Positions 2,363-64,000 of a stretch of 64,000 nt of DNA are shown piece by piece (within the stretch, counting starts at the first letter, position 1; every line of letters starts with the position of its first letter). Below the pieces are notes generated by a model. The model made no database searches. It was not told the origin of the DNA and saw only the letters and a list, made by a program, of their open reading frames with translations. Source of the DNA: Mantamonas sphyraenae STR306. Lineage: Eukaryota; Protista; CRuMs. The stretch lies in contig JAPMXV010000059.1 in assembly GCA_026936335.1 (NCBI GenBank), positions 62,001-126,000 on the forward strand, given 5' to 3'. The translations under genes were made by a program, and so were the position numbers.

Positions 2363-4182
2363 ATGTCCACAACGCACGGCACAGCTGAGGCTGTACCCAG
2401 TGAAGCCGCTGGCATGGAGGAAGAGATGAGTGAAGAGGAGGTGGCTGCTGCTGAGGCTCTGGAGGCCGAGGTGAGTGAAGCCGGGTTTTCGAGCAAACTT
2501 GTGGCCGGAATGGCACTCACACACACACGTGCACACACGTATGCACACGTGGACGCATGCAGTTGATGGCTAGGATGCAGAATGCGTTTGTGTCGGAGCC
2601 GACATTGTTGAAGGGGGAGGAAAAGACGGCAGTGTTCGAAGGCAGCGAGCTGATGCCTGCGCACAGCCGTTCTGTGGCTGGAACGCTGTACATTACCAAC
2701 TACCGGGCCATCTTTTACCCTCTGAATGTGTCGTCTTATGTACGTAGGGGCATGTGGAGAGTTGCAAAGGGAGAGAGTGGGTGTGTTGTGTGTGCGTGTG
2801 GCTGACGCGTGCCGGTGTGCCTTTTTCCCCTGCTTCCTCCAGGACGACGCCAGCGACGCCGAAGTGCATCTGCCACTCACGTGTGTGTATGCAGTGAACA
2901 AGGTAAACACCCAGAACGCCATTGAGGTTGTGTCCAAGCTGGGAGAGCGCCACATGCTGCAGTTTGGCAGCCAACGACGACGGCAGCAGGTGTTTCACGC
3001 GCTGAGCACGAGTGTGCGTGAGAGCAGCGGAGAACGTATGTTTGCGTTTGTGAACCGGGAACAAGACGGATGGACGGGCTTGAGTGAGCAGGCAAGGGAA
3101 GCGTACGGGTGGGGCTTGTACGACGCAGAAGCAGAGTACGAGCGGTTGGGAGTGAGCGAGGAAGGCAGTGGGTGGCGTGTGAGCCATGCCAACGCAGAGT
3201 ATGCGCTGTGTGAAACGTATCCACGGGTGTTGGTGGTTCCCAGCAGCGTGAGCGACGAGGAACTGGAGGTGGTGGCGGGGTTTCGCAGCAAGGGGCGCCT
3301 GCCCACGTTGGTGTGGCGCCATCCGGCCAACACGGCCACGTTGTGTCGCTGCTCGCAGCCACGGGTGGGTATGAAACGCAGCCGGTGCGCAGAAGATGAA
3401 AAGCTGTTGGCGTGCATGAACGAGACGTGTGTGGGAGCGGACACGCTGCGGATTGTGGACGTGCGACCGAGGGTGAATGCAGTAGGCAACACGGTGATTG
3501 GCGCAGGGTTTGAAAGCACGTCGTTCTATCCCAACACGCAGTTGGATTTTATGGGCATTGAAAACATCCATGTGATGCGCACGTCGATGCAGAAGCTGAC
3601 GGAGGCGTGCCAGAGCCTACTGGCTACGGATGAGCCGTACAGCCACAGCACCAAGCTGAACGGGTTTCTGGGCGCGGTGGACGCGAGCAACTGGTTGGAT
3701 CACGTGCGCATGGTGCTGACGACGGCGGTGGGCATTGCCAGCAGCCTGGAGCGTGGCGAGAGTGTGTTGGTGCACTGCAGCGACGGGTGGGACCGCACGT
3801 CGCAAGTGATCGGGTTGGCTGAGCTCATGTTGGACGCAGAGTACCGCACGCTGCGTGGCTTCCTGCTGCTGATTGAAAAGGAGTGGCTGAGCTTTGGGCA
3901 CAAGTTCCAGACGCGGTGTGGTCATGGAGCACCGCCGGACGACCAGCAGTCGCCCATCTTTGTGCAATTCTTGGACTGCGTGTACCAACTGCTGGTCATG
4001 CAGCCCTGCCTGTTTGAATTCAACGAGAATCTGCTCCTGTGCATTGCGGAGCATGTGTACAGCTGCCGCTACGGCACGTTTCTGGCCAACTGCGAACGGG
4101 AGCGCGCAGAGCTGGCGAAGAGTACCACGTCGCTGTGGGCTTATGTGTACGCCATGATTGGTGTGGAGGAGGAGGAGGAGGG

Positions 4183-50101: not shown

Positions 50102-52045
50102 TCACTCCTCCTCGACGGCTTGCTTGAGCTGTGCAAGGGCCTGTTTGTACTCGGGGACAAGGTAGTGGAGATCTTGGGCGGGATGGTGAATCTCGGCCAT
50201 GGAACCAGCGTGGTGTGCCTTGGCGAGCATGCTGTTGAAGTGACGATACTCTTTGGACTGGAGGAGGTTGTAGCAGACACCGCGAGCGCCTGCGCGTGCT
50301 GTACGTCCCACACGATGGACATAGGTGCGAATGTGCACGGGGACGTCGTAGTTGACGACGGCATGGACGTTGTCGATGTCCATGCCACGTGCCATGGAGT
50401 CGGAACAGACGAGGACGTGGACGCGTGCAGCACGAAAGTCGTCGAGGATGCGGTCGCGTGCACGCTGGTCGAGTTGGGAGGAGTATTCGGCGACGGTGAG
50501 GCCCTGAAAGTGGGCCAGGAGGAGAGCAAGGCGATGGGTGCTCTGCACGGACGAGGTGAAACAGATGACACCCGTGCGTTGGGTGTCGTCGAGCACCCTG
50601 CGCAGCAGGTGGACAAGGACCATGGGTTTGTCGCCGGCACTGTCGCACAACACCTTGTACTCCGTGAGCCCCGCCGGCGTGGTGTACTTGCCGTCCACAC
50701 TGGTGCTGAACATCCGTGGCCGCACCAGTTTCAACTCGGCAATCTGCTTCGGATTCTGCGTCAGCGTGGCTGAAAAGAGCAGCTTTTGCAGCGGCACGCC
50801 ACGCGCACGCACACACCGCATCAGACTCTCCATCTCGGACGGTTCGGTCTTCCAGTTGCGCCACGTGTGCACCTGTCCTCCTCCGTCCTCCTCCTCCCGT
50901 GTGCGTGGATCGCGTGTGGCTGCGGCCAACACCCGTGGCAACCATCCTTGGTAGGACTGCGTGAGCAGCCGATCAGCCTCATCGACGACGAGGAAGCGCA
51001 AATGTTGCAAATCAAACCCTTCTGTGCCTTCCAGATGGTCCATGAGACGACCGGGCGTACACACGAGAACGTCTGCGTTCAGGACATGGGCCTGCTCCTC
51101 CGCAAACGAGTGCTGTCCCATGGCAATGGCCACACGCACACACGTGTCCCGTGCCACCGCCTCAAACACGGCCTGCACCTGTGTGACCAGGTTGCGCGTG
51201 GGCAGAATCACAAGTGCACGCAGCCGGCACACACGACGGGCCATCAGCGCGTGCACAATGGGCAACACATAACACAGCGTCTTGCCCGAGCCCGTGGGTG
51301 CACTCACACACGTGTCGTGCACCGCCGCCTCACTCACAGGCACAAACGCAGGCACACGCCCCGTGCCCGACGACAAGGTGGTGGAGGACGAAGAAGAAGA
51401 GGAGGAAGAAGAGGAGCCACGCGTCCATGACGCAAGCAGGTGCGGAATCACCGCATTCTGTACAGCAAACAGGGACTCGATGCCCTCGCGCGCAAGATTG
51501 TCCAGCAGTACCTGGGCCAGTCCCAACTGCGTGAGAGGCACCGGCGTTTCGTCGTCGCTGATCTGCACCGCCTCTTTCATCCACTGCGGCAGCACCACCT
51601 CCACACGACTGCGTTTGGGTGCAGGTTCGTCCAGCGCACGGTGGTGGCGGCGTTGTTCATCATCATCGTCGTCGTCGTCGTCGTCATCCTCTGTGTCGGA
51701 GGACGAGTCGTCGTGGCTGTGGCTGGAGGAGGCCGCCGCGGCCGCCGCCGCATGCCCAGCAGACGAAGCCGACGACTCTGAGCCAGCTGAGGACAAAGAG
51801 GACAAGGAAGCGACGGATTCGGCATCGCTGTCCTCATGTGCGTCCATGTGTGTATGTGTGTCGTGTGTGTGGAGTGTGTGTGTGTCGTCGTTGTCGTCGA
51901 CATCGTCCAGCTTGCGCTTGCGAGACTCCACCTTGGCTCGCAACAATTGCAGTTGCCGCTCCTTACGCGCCCTCCTCTCGTTCCGCTTCTCTTGCTTCTT
52001 TTTGTCCTCATGCGCCTCGCTCTGGTAGCGATGCACACGGAACAT
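50102..52045 (-). CDS. DDX51: DEAD-box RNA helicase DDX51/Dbp6
   Basis: APTGSGKT, PTRNL, TPGRL, DEADRLL, SAT, SDSMARGMD, YVHRVGRTARAG. Confidence 0.88.
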   Translation of the reverse strand: MFRVHRYQSEAHEDKKKQEKRNERRARKERQLQLLRAKVESRKRKLDDVDDNDDTHTLHTHDTHTHMDAHEDSDAESVASLSSLSSAGSESSASSAGHAAAAAAASSSHSHDDSSSDTEDDDDDDDDDDEQRRHHRALDEPAPKRSRVEVVLPQWMKEAVQISDDETPVPLTQLGLAQVLLDNLAREGIESLFAVQNAVIPHLLASWTRGSSSSSSSSSSSTTLSSGTGRVPAFVPVSEAAVHDTCVSAPTGSGKTLCYVLPIVHALMARRVCRLRALVILPTRNLVTQVQAVFEAVARDTCVRVAIAMGQHSFAEEQAHVLNADVLVCTPGRLMDHLEGTEGFDLQHLRFLVVDEADRLLTQSYQGWLPRVLAAATRDPRTREEEDGGGQVHTWRNWKTEPSEMESLMRCVRARGVPLQKLLFSATLTQNPKQIAELKLVRPRMFSTSVDGKYTTPAGLTEYKVLCDSAGDKPMVLVHLLRRVLDDTQRTGVICFTSSVQSTHRLALLLAHFQGLTVAEYSSQLDQRARDRILDDFRAARVHVLVCSDSMARGMDIDNVHAVVNYDVPVHIRTYVHRVGRTARAGARGVCYNLLQSKEYRHFNSMLAKAHHAGSMAEIHHPAQDLHYLVPEYKQALAQLKQAVEEE

Positions 52046-52103
52046 TGTGGTCGGAGTGTTGGACAGGACTGGCCACGCGCTCGCAGCCAACCTCGGCCCC
52101 CGC

Positions 52104-52993
52104 ATGCAAGACCTGGGCAAGGGGGAATCCCCTCCTGCGTCGCTTTCGCCTGTGGACGAAAAGTTCCGGGCCAAGTATGCGGTCGAGGATGCCGATGGCT
52201 CCTGGTTGAGGGAGTTTGGGCACAACAACTTCACTTTCATCCGCGGCGGCCGCTTTGTCCTCTTTGACAAGGTGCCGGCTGCCATGGGCAACATCCCTCT
52301 GGACGAATTGAATGCACCCATGTTGGCGTGTGAAGAGATCTTTCGCAACACATCCGTTTTCACACAGTATGCCGCCCGTCTCGGGTTTTCCCTGCTGTTC
52401 GTGGGCATCCTCGTCCTCCTTGGCTTCCCGGCCATGACGGACGGCAGCCAAGGAGAATTGGCAGTCATTCCAGCGCTGCTGTGTATCCTGGGTGCCGCTT
52501 GCATTGGATGGCACTTCTTCCAAATGTCGTCGTTGGTGCCAGGAAGGGTGAGTTTGTGGTGATGCTGATGCTGACGATGCTTGGTGTCGAAGAGAGAGAG
52601 AGAGTGTGTGTGTGTGTCCCTCTCGAAAAGCTGACCTCAACACACCCATCATTGCTCGTGTGTCCGACGCAGTGGCACACGGAGTGCAGCCAGATCTGTG
52701 AGCAGGCGTCGAAGAAAGCATCGTACCGTGCATCGAACCTCAACGTCTCGTTTGTGTTCAAGACGCCGTGGGCGGCGACCAAGGAAGGGTACGACGTTGA
52801 GGCGTACACGCGTACACGGAGCAGTGCCAAACCGTTGCTCCTCATGCTTGTGTACCAGCTGGACTCGGTTCACGAGCGTCAGGAGGAGAAGAGTGGCCGT
52901 TCCCTGGCATCGATTCGCATGGGAGGCGCACAGGCAACACCGGCGGGCCCGCCCCCGGGTTTCGAGGATTACACAGCCAATGAACGGGTTTAG
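52104..52993 (+). CDS. Hypothetical two-TM protein (intron 52548-52672)
   Basis: Phase-0 gtgagt..cag intron joins two ORFs; two hydrophobic helices; C-terminal PPPGFEDY. Confidence 0.55.
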
Positions 52994-53045
52994 AAGGAAA
53001 AGGTGGAAGGTGGAAGGTGCGCCGGCGGAGGCAGCGACGGACGAA

Positions 53046-54536
53046 ATGGAAAACCACACAATTCACCAGGAGGAAGAGGAAGAGGAGGAGCAGTTTGACG
53101 ACGTGCGATTGTTGGATGCCACGTCGGACAACCTGGCAGCGGACAAACAAGAAAAGCAGGGGCAGGGGCAGGCAGTGACGCCGTTGCCGCTGTTGAGTTT
53201 GGTGGTGCTGAGTTCGATTCTGCTCTGCGACGCCCTGTCGGTGACCTTCCTGTTTCCCTTTGTGGTGTTTATGGTGCGTGGGTACGATGGGGTGCAGGAC
53301 GAGCAGGTGGGCATGCTGAGTGGCCTGTTGGCGTCGTCGTTTGCCGTGAGTCAGCTGCTCTCTGCATTCCCCTGGGGCAGGCTCAGCGATCGCATCGGAC
53401 GCCGTCGCACCCTCCTCTCCGGCCTCTTGGGCAACATGGTGGCCATCCTTTTGTTTGGCCTCTCCAACAGCTACGCAACGGCCCTGTTGACACGCTGCCT
53501 TGGTGGGTTGGCAAACGGCAACGTTGGCATTGCCAAAGCCTATCTCTCGGACATCCTGGACCACACCAACATGAATGCAGGCTTCAGTATTTTGGGCCTG
53601 ATGTGGGGTGTGGGCAATGTGCTGGGTCCCGTCATTGGAGGCGTGTTGTACGGCGTCGGCACAGATGCGGGCTTCTCCCCACACATGGTCGCCTGCTTTG
53701 TCATCTGCGCCGTCCAGGTCGTCGGCTTTGTCGTCGGCCTCTTTGTGCTCAAGGAGCCGCGGCGTGAAACGACAGCGGAGGAGGAGGCGGCGGAAATGGA
53801 GGAAGCCGAATCACGCAGTCAGGAATCCGGATTGCAACAGGCATTGCGTCTGCTGAAGGATCCGGGAGTGCGTGCATCCGCAGTCTGCTACGCAATGATT
53901 GCTCTCATTTACATCACGTACGACGAGTCCATGCCTCTGTTGTTCAGCATGGACAAGAAGCGGTGGGGACTTGGCATGAGCAGCACGGACATTGGCATCA
54001 CCTTTGCCATCTCCGGCGCCCTGATTCTTGCCACACAGATTTTCATCTTTCCGCGTGTCGCCGACCGCCTAGGCGTGCGCAAAACCTTTATTGTGAGCCA
54101 AGTTACGGGCACGCTGTACTTTCTCACCTTCCCCTTGGTGAGTCTGCTCAAGGATGCCAGCGATTGGGTGCTGTGGCTCTTCCTCGTGTTCATGATTTTC
54201 AACCGGTCGTGGATTTCCGTGTTTGCATTCACGTCCTCCTTTGTGCTGGTCAACCAGAGTGCACCCGCGGACCAGCGAGGGGCGGCCAATGGGTTGGCAC
54301 AGAGTCTGGGCAGTGGCGCACGCGCTGTCGGCCCCTTCCTCGGCGGTTCCATCTTTGGGGCGTCAACAAACGCAGGTCTGGGGCTGTTTGGCGTCTTTGT
54401 GCTTTACATCATCCTGGTGGTGTTTAGCATGGGCAACAGCTGGCTGGCCATCACGGGCCTTGTTGACAGGCCGGTCAGCGAGACCAAAGCAGCTGCAAAC
54501 GTGGAGATGAAGAGCTTGGAGGACAAGAAGGTGTGA
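53046..54536 (+). CDS. Major facilitator superfamily transporter (DHA1/ZIFL-like)
   Basis: Motif A WGRLSDRIGRR, GPVIGG, about 12 TM helices, RGAANGL. Confidence 0.9.
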   Translation: MENHTIHQEEEEEEEQFDDVRLLDATSDNLAADKQEKQGQGQAVTPLPLLSLVVLSSILLCDALSVTFLFPFVVFMVRGYDGVQDEQVGMLSGLLASSFAVSQLLSAFPWGRLSDRIGRRRTLLSGLLGNMVAILLFGLSNSYATALLTRCLGGLANGNVGIAKAYLSDILDHTNMNAGFSILGLMWGVGNVLGPVIGGVLYGVGTDAGFSPHMVACFVICAVQVVGFVVGLFVLKEPRRETTAEEEAAEMEEAESRSQESGLQQALRLLKDPGVRASAVCYAMIALIYITYDESMPLLFSMDKKRWGLGMSSTDIGITFAISGALILATQIFIFPRVADRLGVRKTFIVSQVTGTLYFLTFPLVSLLKDASDWVLWLFLVFMIFNRSWISVFAFTSSFVLVNQSAPADQRGAANGLAQSLGSGARAVGPFLGGSIFGASTNAGLGLFGVFVLYIILVVFSMGNSWLAITGLVDRPVSETKAAANVEMKSLEDKKV

Positions 54537-54610
54537 GATGGGCGAAGGGAAGGGGAACAGAGGAAGCAGTGCACAAAAATGAACAATTTGGTATCCTCAC
54601 ATGCGCCGCC

Positions 54611-57600
54611 ATGTCCAACACAATGAGCAGCCAGCCAGCAGACCCTTCGCTCCAAGCGGTATGTCACTGGCCCCTCGTGTTTGCAAAACGTACACATGTA
54701 GCTGACACTCCTCCCTTTTGCTTGCACATGCCTTTGTCTGGACCTCGTTGCCTCTCGTGTGTGCGCGTGTGTGTGCGTGCGGTGTTTGCTCGAATTCGCG
54801 CCTCGTCCATTTGTGCGTCGTTGCCGTCGTCGCACATACGCCATCCCCACCACAGAACTTTGCCTTTATCACTGTGGGCCTGTTTGTGTCTGCGCTGGTG
54901 TCGTCGGCCAACAAATATGTGTCGACGGTGTTTCAGATGAGCCAGCACCGGCCGAAAGGTGTGTTTTGCCTCGGGAGGGCTCTCCGGGACAACCCGCACA
55001 CACAGAAACGCGGCGAGCACTGACACAGCGACCCCGATTGCCCTGGGCATGCACACGATCACACGGACACAAACCGCACACAGCACTGGCGCTGGGGTTC
55101 TTTGCTGGCGCGTGGTACTTTGCCTTCAACATGCTGGTGCTTGTGTTGAACAGCCCAGCCACGAGCGAGCTGGATCTGCTGTACAAGTCGTCGTTTGGGT
55201 TTGGGGCAATCACAATGGCGTTTGGGCCGTTTCTGGTGTTGACACCGACACGGTGCGTTGTGTGGTGGGATGCGTGGAGGCGGCAGGTGATGTGGGGAGA
55301 AGGAGAAACGCTGACACAGACACTGGCTGGCTGGAGCGCAGCCAAATCGCCCTGAAGAAGGAGACCTTTTTCAAGAAGCTGGTGATGGGTGCACAGAAGG
55401 ACGAGACGCGGTACTTTGCGCTGAGCATGTTTTGTGTGCTGACGGCGATGCAGGTGTTTGTGGTGTATTCGATCTACGTGGTGCTGGAGTCGCTCACAAA
55501 CGACCTGCGCCTGATCCTGGGCATTGTGGTGGGCTACTCCCTCGTGTGTGTGTTCTACCTGGTGATCTTCTACTCGGTGATGATGAAGAAGGAGGTTGTG
55601 ATCGGCGGGATCAACCTGATGGACCAGATCCGCAAGAACATCAAGGTGCGGAAGGGTGGGAAGAACGAGGATGCGTCTGCGCCGCAGCTGTACGACGAAG
55701 AGGGCAACCCGTACACGTATGTGAATGTGCTGAACCACAAACATTACGTCAAGGTGTACCTGGCTGCGTTTGTGGTTGTGACGTTGGGCTGCGCCGGGAT
55801 GGTGATCTATCTGTTTGTGGAGCAGAGTGCAGCATGGGATGCGATGAGTGTGCTTGGACAGACGATTGTGACGGGCTTCTTTGTGCTGAATGTGCTCACT
55901 GTGATTGTGCTTGTGATCTTTGTGCTGAACATTGCGTTCCACCCTGTGAACATGGCCACAGAGGTGGTGATGGACGACGGGCGGGTGGTGTCGATTGACA
56001 AGGTAAGGGGGTGAGCGTGGAAGGAATGATGCGACAAGGGGGTGGGTGAGGGCACACACACACTGACACGAGAGACGACGGGTTGGGACAGATTCGCTAC
56101 TGCGCGGTGGCGAGGCAGAGCGACCGTGTGCCGCTGTTTGCGTATGGACAATCGTTTGACCCTGCGAAAGGGTCGATCATGCGGCTGGTGATGAAGCACA
56201 TGGAGTCGTGCGACAACAGTGCGTGGTACAGGGGCAGTTCGTCGCTGGGCACGTATGGAAAGCTGCACCAGAGCAACGACTGGCGATGCATGTATGTGCT
56301 GCTGACGGGCGAGTCGTACAACAACGACCTGGCTGAGCACTTTCTGTTCAAGATGCAGACGTATGTGCAGGGACGGTACTACGGAGAGGTGGAAAGCGAG
56401 GAGGCGCTGGACAGCGTGTCGCCGCTGGGGTGGATGAGCGGCTGCTACGGGTTTGTGGATGCACTGGCGAACGAGTACAGCGAGGAGAAGAAGCTCAAGG
56501 CACTCGGCGAGGAGGCAGTGGCCTTTAAGGAGGTGATGGCGTATCTGGGCGAAGCTGCTGAGCAGCGGAAGCGCATCCTGAAGCACTTTTGCTCGGTCGA
56601 GTCTGTCAAGGATCGTCAAGATGTGCATTATCGTGTGCACAAGGCTGTACAAGAGCATTTTTTGGCCACAACTGGAAGCAGCAGCCAGCTGACCACTGCG
56701 TTGCGCGCTGCACGCCGCCGAAAGGCTGACAAAGACGCACCGCCGGTATCATCCTCATCGTCGCGGCCGTCCAACCTTATTCTGGACATTGTAGAGGTCG
56801 GTGCGACCGACAACGAGTATGCGGCGTTTAACGACTACATGTACCGGGACGGCGACGGATTCCTGCTTGTGTACAGCCAAACTTCGCGTGCGTCCTTTGA
56901 CGAGCTGCCGACCATTGTGGAACGCATCTACAGGGTGAAAGACACGGACCGGCTGGCCATGCTTGTGGTAGGCAACAAGTGCGACCTGGAGGAAGAGCGG
57001 CAGGTTGCAGACTCGGAAGGAGAGGCGTACGCAGACTCGCTGGGGTTCCGCACGCCGTATGTGTCGACGAGTGCCAAGCACCGCATCAATGTGGATGAAG
57101 CTTTTGGCAGATTGGCGGCACGTGCGCCTCTGAAGGGCGGTTCGAACGAGCTGAAGCTAATTGTGGTGGGCGCCGGTGGCGTGGGCAAGTCAGCACTGAT
57201 TGTTCAGCATTTGACGGGCGTTTTTATGGACGAGTACGACCCGACAATTGAGGACTCGTACCGCAAGCAGGTGAATCTGGATGGGTTTGGTGACGACAGC
57301 GACTTGTTTTCGGACGGTCCCGCAAAGAACATGAAGAAGAAGAAGGGCGGATTCAGCGGAGGCAAGAGCAGCAGCAGCAAGCCCAAACCGCCGCCCGAGC
57401 CAAAGTTGGACGAGCCGAAGCGCAAGGAACGGCCAAAGAAGTCGTCGAAAGTGCAGGAGGGAAGCGAAAGTGCACAGGAAGCGAAGCCCATGGACACAGA
57501 CAAGGATGTGCAACCGGATGCGTCGCGCAAAGGCAAGAAGAAGAAGAGGATGGACGTGGAAAACGAGAGGTTGGAATTGGGTGTGATGATGAACGACGGC

Positions 57601-59292
57601 CTGATGCAGGAGGTTGTAGTAGAGGTGGAGCTGGATGAGGACGAAGCGGCCAAGGAGCTTGCACGCATGCAGCGGTACTGGGCAACGATGCGCTCGTCGT
57701 ACCGCATGGGTGGCCAGCGCATGGAAGGGGTCAAGGGCATGAGCAAGCTGCAGTTGCGTGTGGAACAGGTGCAGAGGAAGAGTGCGGCGATGCAGGGACC
57801 ATCGCGTATGGAGGCGTCGAACGGAGAGAACGTGCGTGTGAGTGCAGATGGCCTGACGGTGGAGCATGCGGAAGAGGCGGCGCGAGAGCACAGCGCGTAC
57901 GTGTGCAGCGACTTGCCGTTTGTGCGAGGTGTGAGCGTGTTTGAAGCGGTTGTGACGTGCGAGGACGAGGTGGGTGGAGGAGTGGCGATTGGAGTGAGTA
58001 CAGAGATGAGTCTGCGTGGTGTGGAGGGCGGGCGAACGGGCGCTGTGTTTGCACTGCGATCGGACGGACGGCTGGTCAAGACACCGGGAGATCTGAGGGA
58101 GGCAGGAGCAGAGGCGACGTTCTGCGGCGGGTTTGAACCAGAGGCGTGGAAGGGAGAGGGTGGAGCGGAGGTGTGGGAGGCGGATGAGGAGGAGGAGGCT
58201 GCGGCGGGGATGGGAGGCTTGTATGGAAACAAGGGCAAGGGCAAGGGCAAGGGCAAAGACGCGGTGGATGATGAACCAGGGAAGCTGGAAGCGATGGTGG
58301 CGAGCAAGCGATGCCGTGTGGTGAGCGTGCTTGTGGACTATGAGCGGGGATGTGTGGCGTATGCGGTGGACGGGGTGTACCAGGGAGTGGCGTATGCAGG
58401 GATGGGGCAGGAGAACAAGGCGGTGTATGCGTGTGTGATGGGCACACAGGAGGGCAAGTGGAAGGTGGAGATGAACTTTGGGCATGCGCCGCTTCGGTAC
58501 CGAGGAGCGTTTGGACGGGTGCGTGGACAGGGGATGTTTGTAAAGGCGTTCAATGTGAGCAAGCCCGAGAGCATGGCAAGCCCAGTGATGCTGAAGGAGG
58601 TGCGGGAGGCGGTGGACAAGGCGAACGCAAAACTGGTGGAGGAGTTGGAGAAGGAGGTGGACAAGGCCAAAGGGCGAGAAAATGGAAGGGAGGTGTCGAT
58701 GGCAGGGGACGTGGTGATGGAGATGCAGCAGCGCACAAAGGATCTGGTGATGCGGGCGGCGCTGGAGTCCTGGGGTGGCCTCGGTACAGCCGAACAGATG
58801 TACATTGTGGAGCGAGTGCGCTCGGCACAGAAGGAGGTTGTGGCCAGGATGGCGGAGGAAGGGTGGTTGCACGCCGCACCCAAGGCGTTCCAAGTGCAGG
58901 TGATGCGTGATCTGACGCTAAGCCACGACGAAATGACGTTGCTTGCAGCAGAGTGCATGCCCAGCGTGGAGGGCAAGGGAAACAGCGATGCGGCAGAGGC
59001 ACACGTACAGTACGCCCGCTTTCATGCTCACGTGGGCATGTCACTGTACCTTGCGTTTGAAGCGATGCTGTGGACGAGTGCGGCGAGCGTGGCGGAGGCG
59101 AAAAAGGTGCTTCAGCGCGTCGAACGGACGATGGAAGAGACTCTAAAGGTGGTGAAGCCGACCAAATCCGACTCTGCCAGCATGAATGTGGACCATGCCG
59201 AGGTGTGGGAGCAGTACCTGTTTGCGCTCGCCTTGCATGACACGCTGCTCGTGTGGCTGGGTGAACTGAGCGAGACACTGTCGGCTGCGTGA
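54611..59292 (+). CDS. 7TM + longin/R-SNARE-like + circularly permuted Ras + SPRY + helical domain fusion (exons 54611-54658, 54856-54958, 55084-55252, 55342-56002, 56092-59292; ~1393 aa)
   Basis: Four GT-AG introns with matching phases; NKCD and TSAK precede GAGGVGKS and YDPTIEDSY; SPRY-type VAIGV...VDG-YQG-AY...NFG. Confidence 0.75.
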
Positions 59293-59356: not shown

Positions 59357-60289
59357 TCACTTGTCTCCTTTGTAGAGGGGGGACGCGAAGCAGGAGGTGA
59401 CGTGGTCGTTCACCAGTCCGATGGCCTGCATGAAAGACAGCATGGTTGTGGGACCCAGCCACTTGAAACCGCGCTTTTTGAACACCTTTGCCATGGCAGT
59501 GGACTCTTTGGTGAAGCCGATTGTCTTTGGGTCTCCGCGGAGGTCGGGCTTGTCAAAAACGATGGGTTTGTTGCCGGGAACGAAGCCGCTGTTGTACACA
59601 AAGTGGTGAAAGGTGGTTCCATCTTCCTGGCGCAGCTTGGCGATGGCCTGGGCGTTGTTGACCATGGCCGATACTTTGGCACGGTTGCGGATGATGCGCG
59701 TGTCCTGGAGCAGCTCGTCGACCTTGTCGGCGTCGTATTGGGCCACGGTGTCGACGTCAAAGTTATCAAAGGCATCGCGCATACCCTGGCGCTTGGACAA
59801 GGTGATGGCCCAGGAGAGGCCTGTGTGGCGAGAGTCAGTGGAAGGGTTCCCGGGAACTCGCTGTTTGTCTGCAGCCTTTTCCGCAGGCTGCTGCTCGAGA
59901 CACACACACGTACCGCTTTGCATGCTCTCCAACGTGAGCATCTCAAACAGTTGATTGTCAGCCTGGTCGCCTTTCTCGATGGGCACGCCCCATTCGTCGT
60001 CATGGTAGGCGACGAGCAGCGGGTTTTCGGCCTGTGCGTAGCCGACCCAGTGGCAACGTGGACGGCCATCGCTGCCCACCTTGGCCGTGACCATGAGCTT
60101 GTTGACAACCGCCCCCGAGTCGGAGGACGATGCCTTTGACTTTGCCTTGCCACTTGCACGCTGGCGCTTGGTATCTTGCGGCGAAAAGTCGGCGTCGTCG
60201 CCCGCGTCGTCGTCGATGTCCCCTTCGCCACCACCATCGACACCGAGGCGAGTGACTTGCTTTCGAGTGCGCTTGGAGCGACGAGACAT
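59357..60289 (-). CDS. tag: DNA-3-methyladenine glycosylase I (Tag family; intron 59913-59821)
   Basis: [59 protein letters not shown]. Confidence 0.9.
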
Positions 60290-60372
60290 TTGGGCAAAGG
60301 TGGATGGAAAGGAAAGTTTGGGGGAGGGGTGGTTGGACGGGCGCGGGGTCCGGCAAACCAAGACAACACACC

Positions 60373-61528
60373 ATGGGGCTGTACCTTTCCAAGGCGTTGG
60401 CCTCGCTGTTTGGCAACACAGAGATGCGCATTGTGATGATTGGACTGGATGCCGCGGGAAAGACCACGTGCCTGTACAAGCTTTCTTTGGGTGAGTTGCT
60501 TGGTGTGTCCACGTGCGCACCACGCACCTCTGGGCGCTGTCGTGCTGCCCACACTGGTGACCGGTTCCCCTGTGCCTGTGCATTGGGGGGGGATGGCACT
60601 ACTGCGGTGCGCGTGTCTTTGCACGCACGCTGCGTCGTGTCGCACACGTGACGTGGCAGAAGGGAGGGGTGGGAGAATTGGGTGGAAGGGTGTGAGGAGG
60701 GCCCAACCCGCGCTGACACAAGAGGTGCGCACTGGGATGCACAGGTGAGGTGGTGGACACCATGCCCACACTGGGTTTCAATGTGGAAACGGTGGAGTAC
60801 AACAATGTGTCGTTCACAGGTGAGTGGTGGTCCGGCCTGGGTTACGGGGCAAGGCGAATTCTCCCGCCCCGCCAACCCCCTCTTGCCGCACGCTCTCCAG
60901 TGGCACACAGACACGCAAAACTCACGCTCGCATGCGCGCACGCACACAGTGTGGGACGTGGGAGGACAGGACAAGATCCGCCAGCTGTGGCAGCACTACT
61001 ACGCAGATGTTCAGGTGAGTTTCCGTTTTTCCGTGAGCCGCTCTCGTGGCGCTGTGGCAAACGGCTTGGGCATTTTGGATTGTGGCAGTTCCCCCCGCTC
61101 ACCCTCTCCCCCCGCTTTCCCCTCCTCACGGACCTCTGCTCACACACACTACCCGTTGGACACGTCGACGACACGTGTGTGTATGGATACACACGGCCGT
61201 GACCACACACACACACACACACACGTCACACGTCGCACAGGGAGTGATCTTTGTGGTCGACAGCAACGATCGCGAGCGTTTGGAGGAGGCCCGCGAGGAG
61301 TTTAGCAACGTGGTGGGCCACTCGGATCTGGACAAGGCTGTGGTGCTGGTGCTGGCCAACAAGCAGGACCTGCCCGAAGCCATGAGCACCTCGGAGATTG
61401 CCGAGGGCCTGGGTCTCAACAACCTCAAGTCCCACGAATGGTTCGTCCAGCCCACTGTCGCCACAGAAGGCACCGGCCTCTACGAGGGGCTCGACTGGCT
61501 CGTCGACAAGGTCAAGAACAAGGCATGA
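60373..61528 (+). CDS. ADP-ribosylation factor family GTPase (introns 60491-60744, 60820-60949, 61015-61240)
   Basis: MG myristoylation start, [31 protein letters not shown]. Confidence 0.92.
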
Positions 61529-61744
61529 TGATGGGCAGAATGGATTGAAAAGCTTTTTTTGGTGATGCCGTGGATTTTGTTTCCACCCCCTCCTCCTTCC
61601 CCGCACGTGCACCCTGATGGAAACCATTGTGTTGTTGGCGGTGTGTGGGTTGCTGTGCAGTTGTCTCGACGGCATGTGTGAGGAGATGACAAGCTGACAA
61701 GCTGACCACCGGCAGCGGGGTTGTTGTTGCACCGAAGTTTCACA

Positions 61745-62355
61745 CTACATCTCCTCCTCCTCCAGCTCTTTTCCCCGTTGCACGCGTTCACGTGCCCCAC
61801 TCAGACTCGTGAGGCTCTTGAGGGCAGTCTCCAATTCCTCCGACACCTTTTTCACGTCTGCCTCGTCGCCCGTCTTCTTGGAATACTCCTTGCCGTTGTC
61901 CGGTTTGCCCATGCCAGCGGCCAGTTCGGCCTCCAGCTGCTCGTACGGCGTCTCCAGCATCTTCTTCTTCCTGTGGTCCGGTGAGCGTGCAGTGTCAGCG
62001 TGTGTGCGTGTGCTGGGAGCCAGGGAGTCGCATGCGCGGATTTCTTTTCGAATCTCAACCCCACCCCCCACTCAACCCCCACTCAACCCCTGCCTTACCT
62101 CCTCTTGTGCAGCTTGGTGGCCGTGTGTGCCTTGAGGGCGTCGCTGTCCATGAAAAAGCGAGAGCAGGACACGCAGTAGAACTTGCCTGCGCCCGGAAGG
62201 TCCAGATCCACCTCCCTGGGTTTGCCGGTGTCGCCAAACTCGCTCAGTTCGGCGTGCACTTGGTCGTGGTCCAGCTTGCGGTTGCGAAGCCGTGTGCCCT
62301 TTCGCGTCTGCTTCTTGTCCGCTTTGCTCTTCTTGCGTTTGTAGACGCCTCCCAT
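61745..62355 (-). CDS. BUD20: Bud20/ZNF593 zinc-finger ribosome biogenesis factor (intron 62098-61971)
   Basis: DLPGAGKFYCVSCSRFF...H-ATKLHKRR, PYEQLEAELAAG. Confidence 0.88.
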
Positions 62356-62409
62356 GTGTGTGTGTGTGTGTGTGTGTGTGCCTGCGGGTGCGCAGCCAGG
62401 GCAAACAGC

Positions 62410-63439
62410 ATGACCACACGCAAGTTGGATGACCTGCAAGATTGGGGGGATTTGGATGGGTTTGAGGATGATCCGTCGCTCAGTGACATTGTCGTTGAAG
62501 CTTCGTCGTCCGAGAGCAATGAGCCAGCAGCCGGCGGATGGCAACGCACCCTGGAGGAGGAGCAGGCATGGCAGGCCCGCAAGCGTCAGCGGCGCGAGCA
62601 GCTCCAGACAAAAGTTGTTGTTGACGACTCCACATACACCGGCTACAACGTCGAAGAGCGTCGCAAGGCCAAGGCCGAAGCGATGATTTCGAGCTTCGTC
62701 AACGTCGGCAGCGACGGAAAGGCCCGCTGCTGGGGCAGCATCTCGGAGGGGGAGCGTGATTTCCATGACAACGCGTGGGGCGTCCCTGTGCTCGACGACA
62801 CAAAGCTGTTTGAGCTGCTCACGCTCAACGTGTTCCAGCCGGTACGTGGGGGTTCCCGAGAACCTTTTGTTCGAGACCATGGCACGCTGACACACACGCA
62901 CACACCACAACACACAGGGACTCAACTGGCGCCAGATCATGAACAAGGCACCAAACATCAAAGCTGCGTTTCTGGACTACGACATCGTCAAGGTGGCTTC
63001 GTTCAGCGACGACGACATCAACCGGCTGCTCAAGCTTCCCGACGGCGAGTTTATACGCAACAAAGCAAAGATCCTGGCCACTGTGTCCAATGCACAGGCA
63101 GTGTGCATCCTCCGTGCTGAAAACAGGTGTTCTTGGGCAAAGTGGCTGTGGACAAATCCAGACATCTGGCCCGAACACGATTTTGACGCCTCGTCTCGCC
63201 TCCAGCCATTCATCAAACCCACCACATTCTACGAGAGCTTTTGTGAGACAAACACCGAGTTTTCACGGCGCCTTGCAAAGGTGCTCCTGGCCAATGGCTT
63301 TGCCTTTCTCGGTCCCATCAACACCTACACATTTGCCCAGAGCGCTGGGTTCTACAACATGCACCTGGATGGCTGTTGGCGCTCTCACAAGGAAAACATC
63401 AAGAACGAGCTTGTGCCGAAGTATGGCGAGCTGAAATGA
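62410..63439 (+). CDS. Second, divergent Tag-family glycosylase (intron 62842-62917)
   Basis: RCW, FHDNAWGVP, LFELLTLNVFQPGLNW, IRNKAKI, GFAFLGP, NMHLDGC. Confidence 0.82.
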
Positions 63440-63448
63440 ATTCCGCCA

Positions 63449-64000
63449 TCAAACGCCCTCCAACACCTCCAGCAACGCATCCACCCACTGCACGAGCGCA
63501 TGCGCAGTCTTGAACACACAGCGGTACTCCTGGTTCATCCTTGCCTTTTCCAGCTTGGACGCCTCGATCTCCTGGCTCGTGAACTTGGAGATCTTAAACT
63601 CGGTTTCCCCTCCAAGCACGGCACGAACACGCTGCAGCACCTTTTTCGCCTCAGCCACACTTGCAGCTTTGTACCACATCATCGCCTCGGCGCCCACGTA
63701 CACCACCGTCGACATCATGGCCGTATACTTGTGGTACGCGGCAGAGAAGTGGCGCACGTCGCCGTCAAGTCGTGGCGACAGGGCCAGCACCTCCTTGCAC
63801 TCTCCAAGCTGCATGTCCTGTGCCATTTGTCGCTGGACCACACCCTGCAGCGCCACAAACCCGCCTTCGGTCAGCAGACCGCCCACAATACGCCTCTGCA
63901 GATCCCGCACCTGGTCCTCCACGTACAGCTGCTCCTGTGTGCCCAGACCACCCCAGGACTCCAGTGCAGCGCGCATTCCCTCGTCCTTTGTCAGTAGTGA
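63449..64000 (-). CDS. 3' end of a gene paralogous to the C-terminal domain of the 7TM-cpRAS protein (5' part beyond window)
   Basis: [23 protein letters not shown] vs [23 protein letters not shown]; [14 protein letters not shown] is identical in both; frame stays open to 64000. Confidence 0.8.
   Translation of the reverse strand, partial: SLLTKDEGMRAALESWGGLGTQEQLYVEDQVRDLQRRIVGGLLTEGGFVALQGVVQRQMAQDMQLGECKEVLALSPRLDGDVRHFSAAYHKYTAMMSTVVYVGAEAMMWYKAASVAEAKKVLQRVRAVLGGETEFKISKFTSQEIEASKLEKARMNQEYRCVFKTAHALVQWVDALLEVLEGV

Follow-up and report, generated by a model that had tools for sequence, protein, structure and literature searches.

Circularly permuted Ras (cpRAS) domains are described in PMC2430557 with only two kinds of partners, VWA domains and alpha-2-macroglobulin-like regions (e.g., CPRas2 from Dictyostelium), and longin domains are known as platforms for small GTPases (PMC3747258). 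The gene analyzed here spans positions 54611-59292 on the forward strand of a 64,000-nucleotide (nt) stretch of contig JAPMXV010000059.1 from Mantamonas sphyraenae STR306 (the window) and encodes a predicted protein of 1393 amino acids that consists of a seven-helix membrane domain, a longin domain, a cpRAS domain, a Lys/Glu-rich linker, an SPRY domain and a helical C-terminal domain. The protein shares with the CPRas proteins (PMC2430557) the same permutation, a similar junction between helix 5 and strand 1, and a similar basic/GF linker after the G2 motif, but differs from them in that the cpRAS domain is part of a polytopic membrane protein, is not accompanied by a VWA or alpha-2-macroglobulin-like part (neither is detected by Pfam in exon 5), and has a degenerate G3 motif. 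By its predicted domain content, this is a third cpRAS architecture.

A first-pass annotation of the window had put forward the same fusion as undescribed, citing the same two cpRAS contexts, and had interpreted it as a GPCR-like (G protein-coupled receptor) module. A literature search, with most subscription journals outside its scope, found no description of the architecture or of the protein family to which it belongs, nor any functional study of cpRAS domains since the original description in 2008. The novelty lies in the family and the architecture; longin, cpRAS and SPRY are established domains.

Gene structure

The five exons add up to 4182 nt in a single open frame. The joined translation, obtained by scripted concatenation of the exons, was used for length, phase and hydropathy; homology searches were run exon by exon, and the Mantamonas plastica protein P0011 (EukProt EP00003, transcript-derived, 1401 amino acids) was used as a stand-in for fold prediction. 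Every exon aligns with P0011 in order, and the same domains are found in that protein. Two paralogs in M. sphyraenae, C30 and C35, lack intron 4 and pass from the last membrane helix to the longin domain within one open frame; in the gene analyzed here, intron 4 contains stop codons in all three frames. C35 also has a donor and an acceptor, read from the sequence, at the codon position equivalent to intron 2. In a second, nearly identical copy of the gene (copy B, discussed below), 6 bases are deleted inside intron 4 and the changes in the flanking exons are all synonymous. Because P0011 spans the exons, the paralogs are intronless at this junction and the changes in copy B are synonymous, the five-exon model, with the four phase-matched GT-AG introns originally proposed, is confirmed at the sequence level. 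The splice support comes from the sister-species transcript and the paralogs rather than from M. sphyraenae RNA reads, which is the one point in favor of two separate genes having been joined by mistake; this explanation is close to untenable given that one transcript-derived open reading frame of M. plastica crosses all the junctions, that two paralogs have no intron between the membrane and longin parts, and that the homologs from Anaeramoeba and Diphylleia are single proteins.

The seven-helix membrane domain

An AlphaFold prediction for the membrane domain of P0011 (72-row alignment) yields seven long helices (pLDDT 94, pTM 0.88), in agreement with the seven hydrophobic segments noted in the first pass, with a longin fold after them. 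On average across the family, loops 3 and 5 contain 6.5 and 9.1 Lys/Arg residues, respectively, whereas the N-terminus is acidic, as are loops 2, 4 and 6; in addition, three homologs have an apparent N-terminal signal peptide that in two of them is followed by glycosylation sequons (identified by eye). Given this charge bias and the signal peptides and sequons of the homologs, the predicted topology with the N-terminus outside and the C-terminus inside, previously deduced from the basic loops, is well supported.

The seven helices, the topology and the signaling domain on the cytosolic tail are all reminiscent of GPCRs and of fusions between GPCRs and effectors, such as the oomycete GPCR-PIPK, which is reportedly a protein of this kind; the predicted helix packing, however, is not that of the GPCR fold. 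Pfam contains no family for the membrane domain and gives no match to any seven-helix receptor up to E = 1 for seven members, and none in exon 4. A Foldseek search with the ortholog model retrieves GPCRs at E = 0.2 or worse with TM-scores of 0.26 or below; the best match in a wide structure search is a designed bundle (Z 8.4), with no GPCR among the top 50; a second-look comparison gives a best GPCR match of Z 4.7 at a root-mean-square deviation (rmsd) of 19.7; and superpositions on GPCRs have rmsd values of 16-26 Å. A GPCR fold was rejected on the strength of the Pfam results and four structure searches with the predicted ortholog model, none of which lends it support, and this part of the earlier interpretation is not borne out. 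Poor structural matches are no proof of a new fold, but a true GPCR modeled so confidently should be expected to score far higher. Thus, on the evidence of the model, a GPCR assignment is not supported, and no match to the domain exists among the other solved folds or in Pfam; the combination of seven helices with a GTPase domain does not imply a GPCR. An ESM Atlas feature search with the membrane domain found nothing.

The domain is approximately 45% identical between Mantamonas and Anaeramoeba, and the near-invariant residues (P0011 numbering) are G93, P94, P100, R125, Q139, Y167, Y174 and R199, of which R125, Q139, Y167 and Y174 lie in or beside helices. This high conservation, the GP..P kink in helix 3, the conserved polar residues and the persistence of the domain in family members that have no longin are compatible with a channel, transporter or lipid-handling enzyme of a new fold that would be positioned or regulated at fusion sites by the tail. 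We consider this unlikely: the ortholog model matches no channel or transporter structure, bestrophins reach a Z score of only about 5, and even the best match is to a designed bundle.

The longin domain

The first cytosolic domain was initially described as longin-like, and the ortholog model bears this out, with the five-strand, three-helix, profilin-like longin fold that matches Sec22 at Z 16.8 (rmsd 1.9) and VAMP7 at Z 16.7; a Foldseek search supports the longin at E = 3e-4. The model thus supports a longin closest to those of the SNARE proteins Sec22 and VAMP7. The longin R-SNAREs VAMP7 and Sec22b and the multi-pass Sec22a/c are therefore the closest counterparts of this part of the protein, and several family members also have an R-SNARE motif downstream; unlike in VAMP7 and Sec22, the Mantamonas membrane part consists of seven helices in front of the longin rather than an anchor behind the SNARE motif, and the SNARE motif, where present in the family, is internal. 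A search for a remnant R-SNARE helix behind the longin found none in this gene.

The cpRAS domain

A Pfam search with exon 5 places Ras profile positions 56-158 ahead of Roc positions 1-46, and this order, together with that of the motifs (G3-G4-G5-G1-G2), corroborates the permutation recognized in the first pass. Its closest homologs are for the most part cpRAS-VWA proteins, with 40-54% identity across the domain. Nearly all motifs are retained, the exception being G3, which reads EVGATDNEY in this protein and DTYYDTEY in M. plastica, compared with D[TS]AGQEE[YF] in the full-length cpRAS homologs compared (mostly cpRAS-VWA proteins). Thus, G3 is altered differently in the two Mantamonas proteins, and G1, G2, G4 and G5 are kept in both; the DxxG motif and catalytic glutamine of active Ras GTPases are missing, whereas the nucleotide-binding motifs G1, G4 and G5 are in place. 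In Ras proteins, the glycine and glutamine of G3 are needed for switch II and for hydrolysis. Because both are lost while G1, G4 and G5 are intact, the domain probably binds nucleotide and hydrolyses it poorly or in an unregulated manner. Accordingly, cpRAS gains a third context along with a prediction of nucleotide binding without normal hydrolysis. RGK proteins are Ras-fold proteins with an altered G3. As in RGK-type proteins, the DxxGQ motif is lost and the P-loop is kept; in contrast to them, the Mantamonas domain is permuted, fused and equipped with a classical Ras effector loop.

The common junction and linker favor a shared origin with other cpRAS domains; in a quick tree, this domain falls among the cpRAS sequences without strong support. 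Independent origin from a tandem Ras gene, of which contig C9 has one, was considered and set aside in view of the likeness of the junction and linker to those of cpRAS-VWA proteins, a question that the tree does not settle. The C9 gene (L028:2746-6102, reverse strand) has an open frame of 1119 amino acids with two canonical tandem Ras domains, WD40 repeats and a hydrophobic multi-helix C-terminus, and represents a second, unrelated fusion of Ras with a membrane part. In the loci examined, no cpRAS is seen in any of the three cpRAS-type VWA genes of this genome; in a cpRAS-type VWA protein encoded at C44:472440-477002, an actin-like N-terminal fragment occupies the usual place of cpRAS.

Three Anaeramoeba members of the family contain the bare Ras effector loop, YDPTIEDS (8-10 residues kept), followed by a KKKxxF basic linker as in this gene. 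Because these three members keep only this loop and linker, the function retained by the cpRAS region points to the effector-loop surface. The same observation suggests either that the cpRAS fusion predates the split of CRuMs and metamonads and was later trimmed to the effector loop, or that it spread by horizontal transfer. It could also be argued that cpRAS is a decaying passenger and that the protein works via its other domains, given the loss of G3, the heavy decay of the domain in copy B, its absence from a second M. plastica form and the few residues left in Anaeramoeba. This possibility appears quite improbable because two species with longins just 61% identical have both preserved G1, G2, G4 and G5 and because the middle part that contains cpRAS is 47% identical between the two.

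The SPRY domain and the C-terminal part

The SPRY domain proposed in the first pass was recovered with the family alignment, which matches the RanBP10 SPRY domain at E = 4e-9, though this copy alone reaches only E = 5e-4 (region only), below the Pfam cut-off. At the family level, the presence of a divergent SPRY domain is therefore supported. A weak ESM Atlas lead to a PilJ-type helical domain in the tail was disregarded.

A family of membrane proteins with exchangeable modules

A profile of the membrane domain identifies 96 proteins among 1.84 billion representatives. The named members are from M. plastica, Diphylleia rotans, Anaeramoeba ignava, A. flamelloides and the choanoflagellate Hartaetosiga balthica; the others are metagenomic, and several of these adjoin eukaryote-type genes. 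On two gene-dense JGI metagenome contigs (L032 and L043), the neighbors are RBP-receptor (STRA6-like), HlyIII and CAP_C genes. No relative turned up in pattern scans, of limited sensitivity, that covered prokaryotic genomes and viral contigs. Being common to CRuMs, an anaerobic metamonad and a choanoflagellate, the membrane domain may be of great age and either missing or unrecognized in model organisms; with it, an unclassified seven-helix domain joins the eukaryotic trafficking toolkit.

A supported clade (98/97; midpoint root) unites the members that have a longin. The Synaptobrevin (R-SNARE) motif is found in the C30 paralog (E = 5e-15), in P0008 from A. flamelloides (E = 4e-11) and in P0004 from Diphylleia, with a relic in P0009; in P0008, it is followed in the same chain by a weak syntaxin-like Q-SNARE match. 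Q-SNARE-like motifs were seen by eye only in the C35 paralog, P0141 and P0158 (for the C35 stretch, E = 0.5 against syntaxin 8). P0003 contains polyproline and a WH2/WCA (WH2-central-acidic) motif matching N-WASP and WAVE1, which is weaker in P0005 and C30. Most longin members have SPRY near the end, and in some family members the C-terminal part is a kinase-like, SAM or MORN domain. No full cpRAS was found outside the two Mantamonas species, and most members have no GTPase. Judging from these sequences, the family draws on several alternative cassettes, of which the Ras module is one.

The WCA motifs and polyproline in P0003, P0005 and C30 resemble those of the WASP-family nucleation-promoting factors, with the difference that the relatives of the Mantamonas type are integral membrane proteins. 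The product of the C30 gene (L027:3401-7822, forward strand), in which a seven-helix anchor is combined with a WCA motif (WH2 E = 0.009), polyproline, an R-SNARE motif and an SPRY domain, is a candidate integral-membrane activator of Arp2/3. The C35 gene (L026:2526-6837, reverse strand) encodes a long acidic region, the Q-SNARE-like stretch and two SPRY domains, with a frame change near a CAG repeat (approximately 4160-4180) that represents an intron or an assembly slip. Integral membrane proteins with an internal SNARE or a WCA motif would be unusual designs for fusion and actin nucleation.

Proposed function

These observations are compatible with the hypothesis that the protein is a membrane-anchored scaffold for vesicle traffic and the local control of actin, with swappable modules, a proposal to which we give an even chance. 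The seven-helix domain would hold the protein in the membrane with the N-terminus outside or in the lumen, as the charge bias and the homologs' signal peptides and sequons imply. Next, on the cytosolic side, the Sec22/VAMP7-type longin is probably a signal for sorting or a platform for docking, by analogy with known longins. The region after the longin is the variable module, which carries SNARE motifs, the WCA motif or, in this gene, cpRAS. Because DxxGQ is lost while the P-loop, the guanine-specificity motifs and the effector loop are kept, cpRAS most likely binds guanine nucleotide and displays the Ras switch-I surface without normal cycling driven by GTPase-activating proteins, and might serve as a standing membrane dock for Ras effectors. 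SPRY and the tail would recruit further partners.

Several observations weigh against this scaffold hypothesis. No SNARE or WCA motif is detectable in this gene itself: there is no Synaptobrevin match at 56470-56640, and a search of exon 5 with the R-SNARE profile of the family finds none. No longin is detectable in members that fall outside the longin clade. The membrane domain is conserved to a degree that simple anchoring would not require, and it may therefore be active in its own right.

The first-pass reading of the protein as a receptor/GTPase signaling or trafficking module holds in its trafficking and signaling flavor, but a working receptor/GTPase switch is doubtful because G3 is degenerate in both Mantamonas species. 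A single-chain receptor of a non-GPCR type is conceivable, in which an outside cue would shift the helix bundle and the longin, serving as an integral exchange factor or platform, would pass the signal on to the tethered cpRAS; the topology with two large basic inner loops, the role of longins as small-GTPase platforms (PMC3747258) and the kinase-like, SAM or MORN domains at the ends of other members fit this scheme. It is nevertheless a doubtful one, considering that the outer loops are only about 8-13 residues long, G3 is degenerate, most of the family has no GTPase and the fold is not that of GPCRs.

The scaffold hypothesis can be extended, speculatively and with little expectation that the whole will hold, to an ancient family of eukaryotic proteins in which a membrane domain of new fold would act as a gating sensor and a single polypeptide would unite components for vesicle fusion (longin, R- and Q-SNARE), for the activation of Arp2/3 (WCA) and for Ras signaling (cpRAS). 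Different lineages would have kept different subsets, animals, fungi and plants appear to have lost the family or changed it beyond detection, and the two Mantamonas copies described next may also swap tails by recombination between near-identical blocks.

The inverted gene pair and its neighborhood

The gene (copy A) is followed about 4 kb downstream, tail to tail, by copy B, with which it shares two nearly identical blocks (Table 1). As proteins, the copies are only 29% identical in the cpRAS region and 34% in the tail, and the copy-B tail has no Pfam match. The simplest reading of these sequences is that gene conversion preserves identity in the membrane and longin parts, with the cassettes left to diverge. 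M. plastica is mosaic in a like manner, all four middle-by-tail combinations having been assembled as isoforms, which may be assembly chimeras; orthology of copy B with the second M. plastica form is weakly suggested. An exchange of tails within the Mantamonas pair by inversion is possible.

Table 1. Features of copy A and of the repeated blocks (window positions; C59, contig coordinates)
Feature	Position	Strand	Remarks
Exon 1	54611..54658	+	Contains start codon and short outer N-terminus; 6/10 identical to that of P0011
Intron 1	54659..54855	+	GT-AG, phase 0, 197 nt
Exon 2	54856..54958	+	Membrane helix 1; 23/34 identical to P0011
Intron 2	54959..55083	+	GT-AG, phase 1, 125 nt
Exon 3	55084..55252	+	Helices 2-3, conserved GP..P kink; 45/55 identical to P0011
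Intron 3	55253..55341	+	GT-AG, phase 2, 89 nt; CTGAC 31 nt before AG
Exon 4	55342..56002	+	Basic loop 3, helices 4-7, long basic loop 5; 177/220 identical to P0011
Intron 4	56003..56091	+	GT-AG, phase 0, 89 nt; CTGAC 29 nt before AG
Exon 5	56092..59292	+	Longin to stop codon; 388/1012 identical to P0011
SNARE-type (Sec22/VAMP7) longin	56092..56487	+	Predicted from ortholog model and 61% identity to ortholog
cpRAS, order G3-G4-G5-G1-G2	56773..57297	+	Pfam order and motif alignment
G3	56785-56820	+	Degenerate; cpRAS motif alignment
G4 (NKCD)	56974-56985	+	Intact
G5 (SAK)	57070-57078	+	Intact
G1	57169-57192	+	Intact
G2 (YDPTIED, with TIE in G2)	57235-57255	+	Intact; RAS-family effector loop
Lys/Glu-rich linker	57298..57620	+	Begins with KKKxGF element common to Anaeramoeba members and cpRAS-VWA linkers
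Split, divergent SPRY (RanBP9/10-like)	57814..58536	+	Family profile
C-terminal helical domain	58540..59292	+	To stop codon; homologous tails in paralogs
Block 1	54402..56581		98% identical, introns included, to copy B C59:128229-130402; coding differences all synonymous
Block 2	57610..58643		98% identical to copy B C59:126089-127122
Copy B 3' end	63449..64000	-	Decayed cpRAS, different tail; extends beyond window

The spacer between the copies (window 59360-63439) contains two methyladenine glycosylase genes in opposite orientation, one beside each copy, with an ARF-like gene and a C2H2 zinc-finger gene between them, a layout left behind by an old inverted duplication. Upstream of copy A (window 50105-54536), an ordinary DEAD-box helicase gene on the reverse strand and an MFS transporter gene on the forward strand are found, the last 135 nt of the latter lying within block 1.

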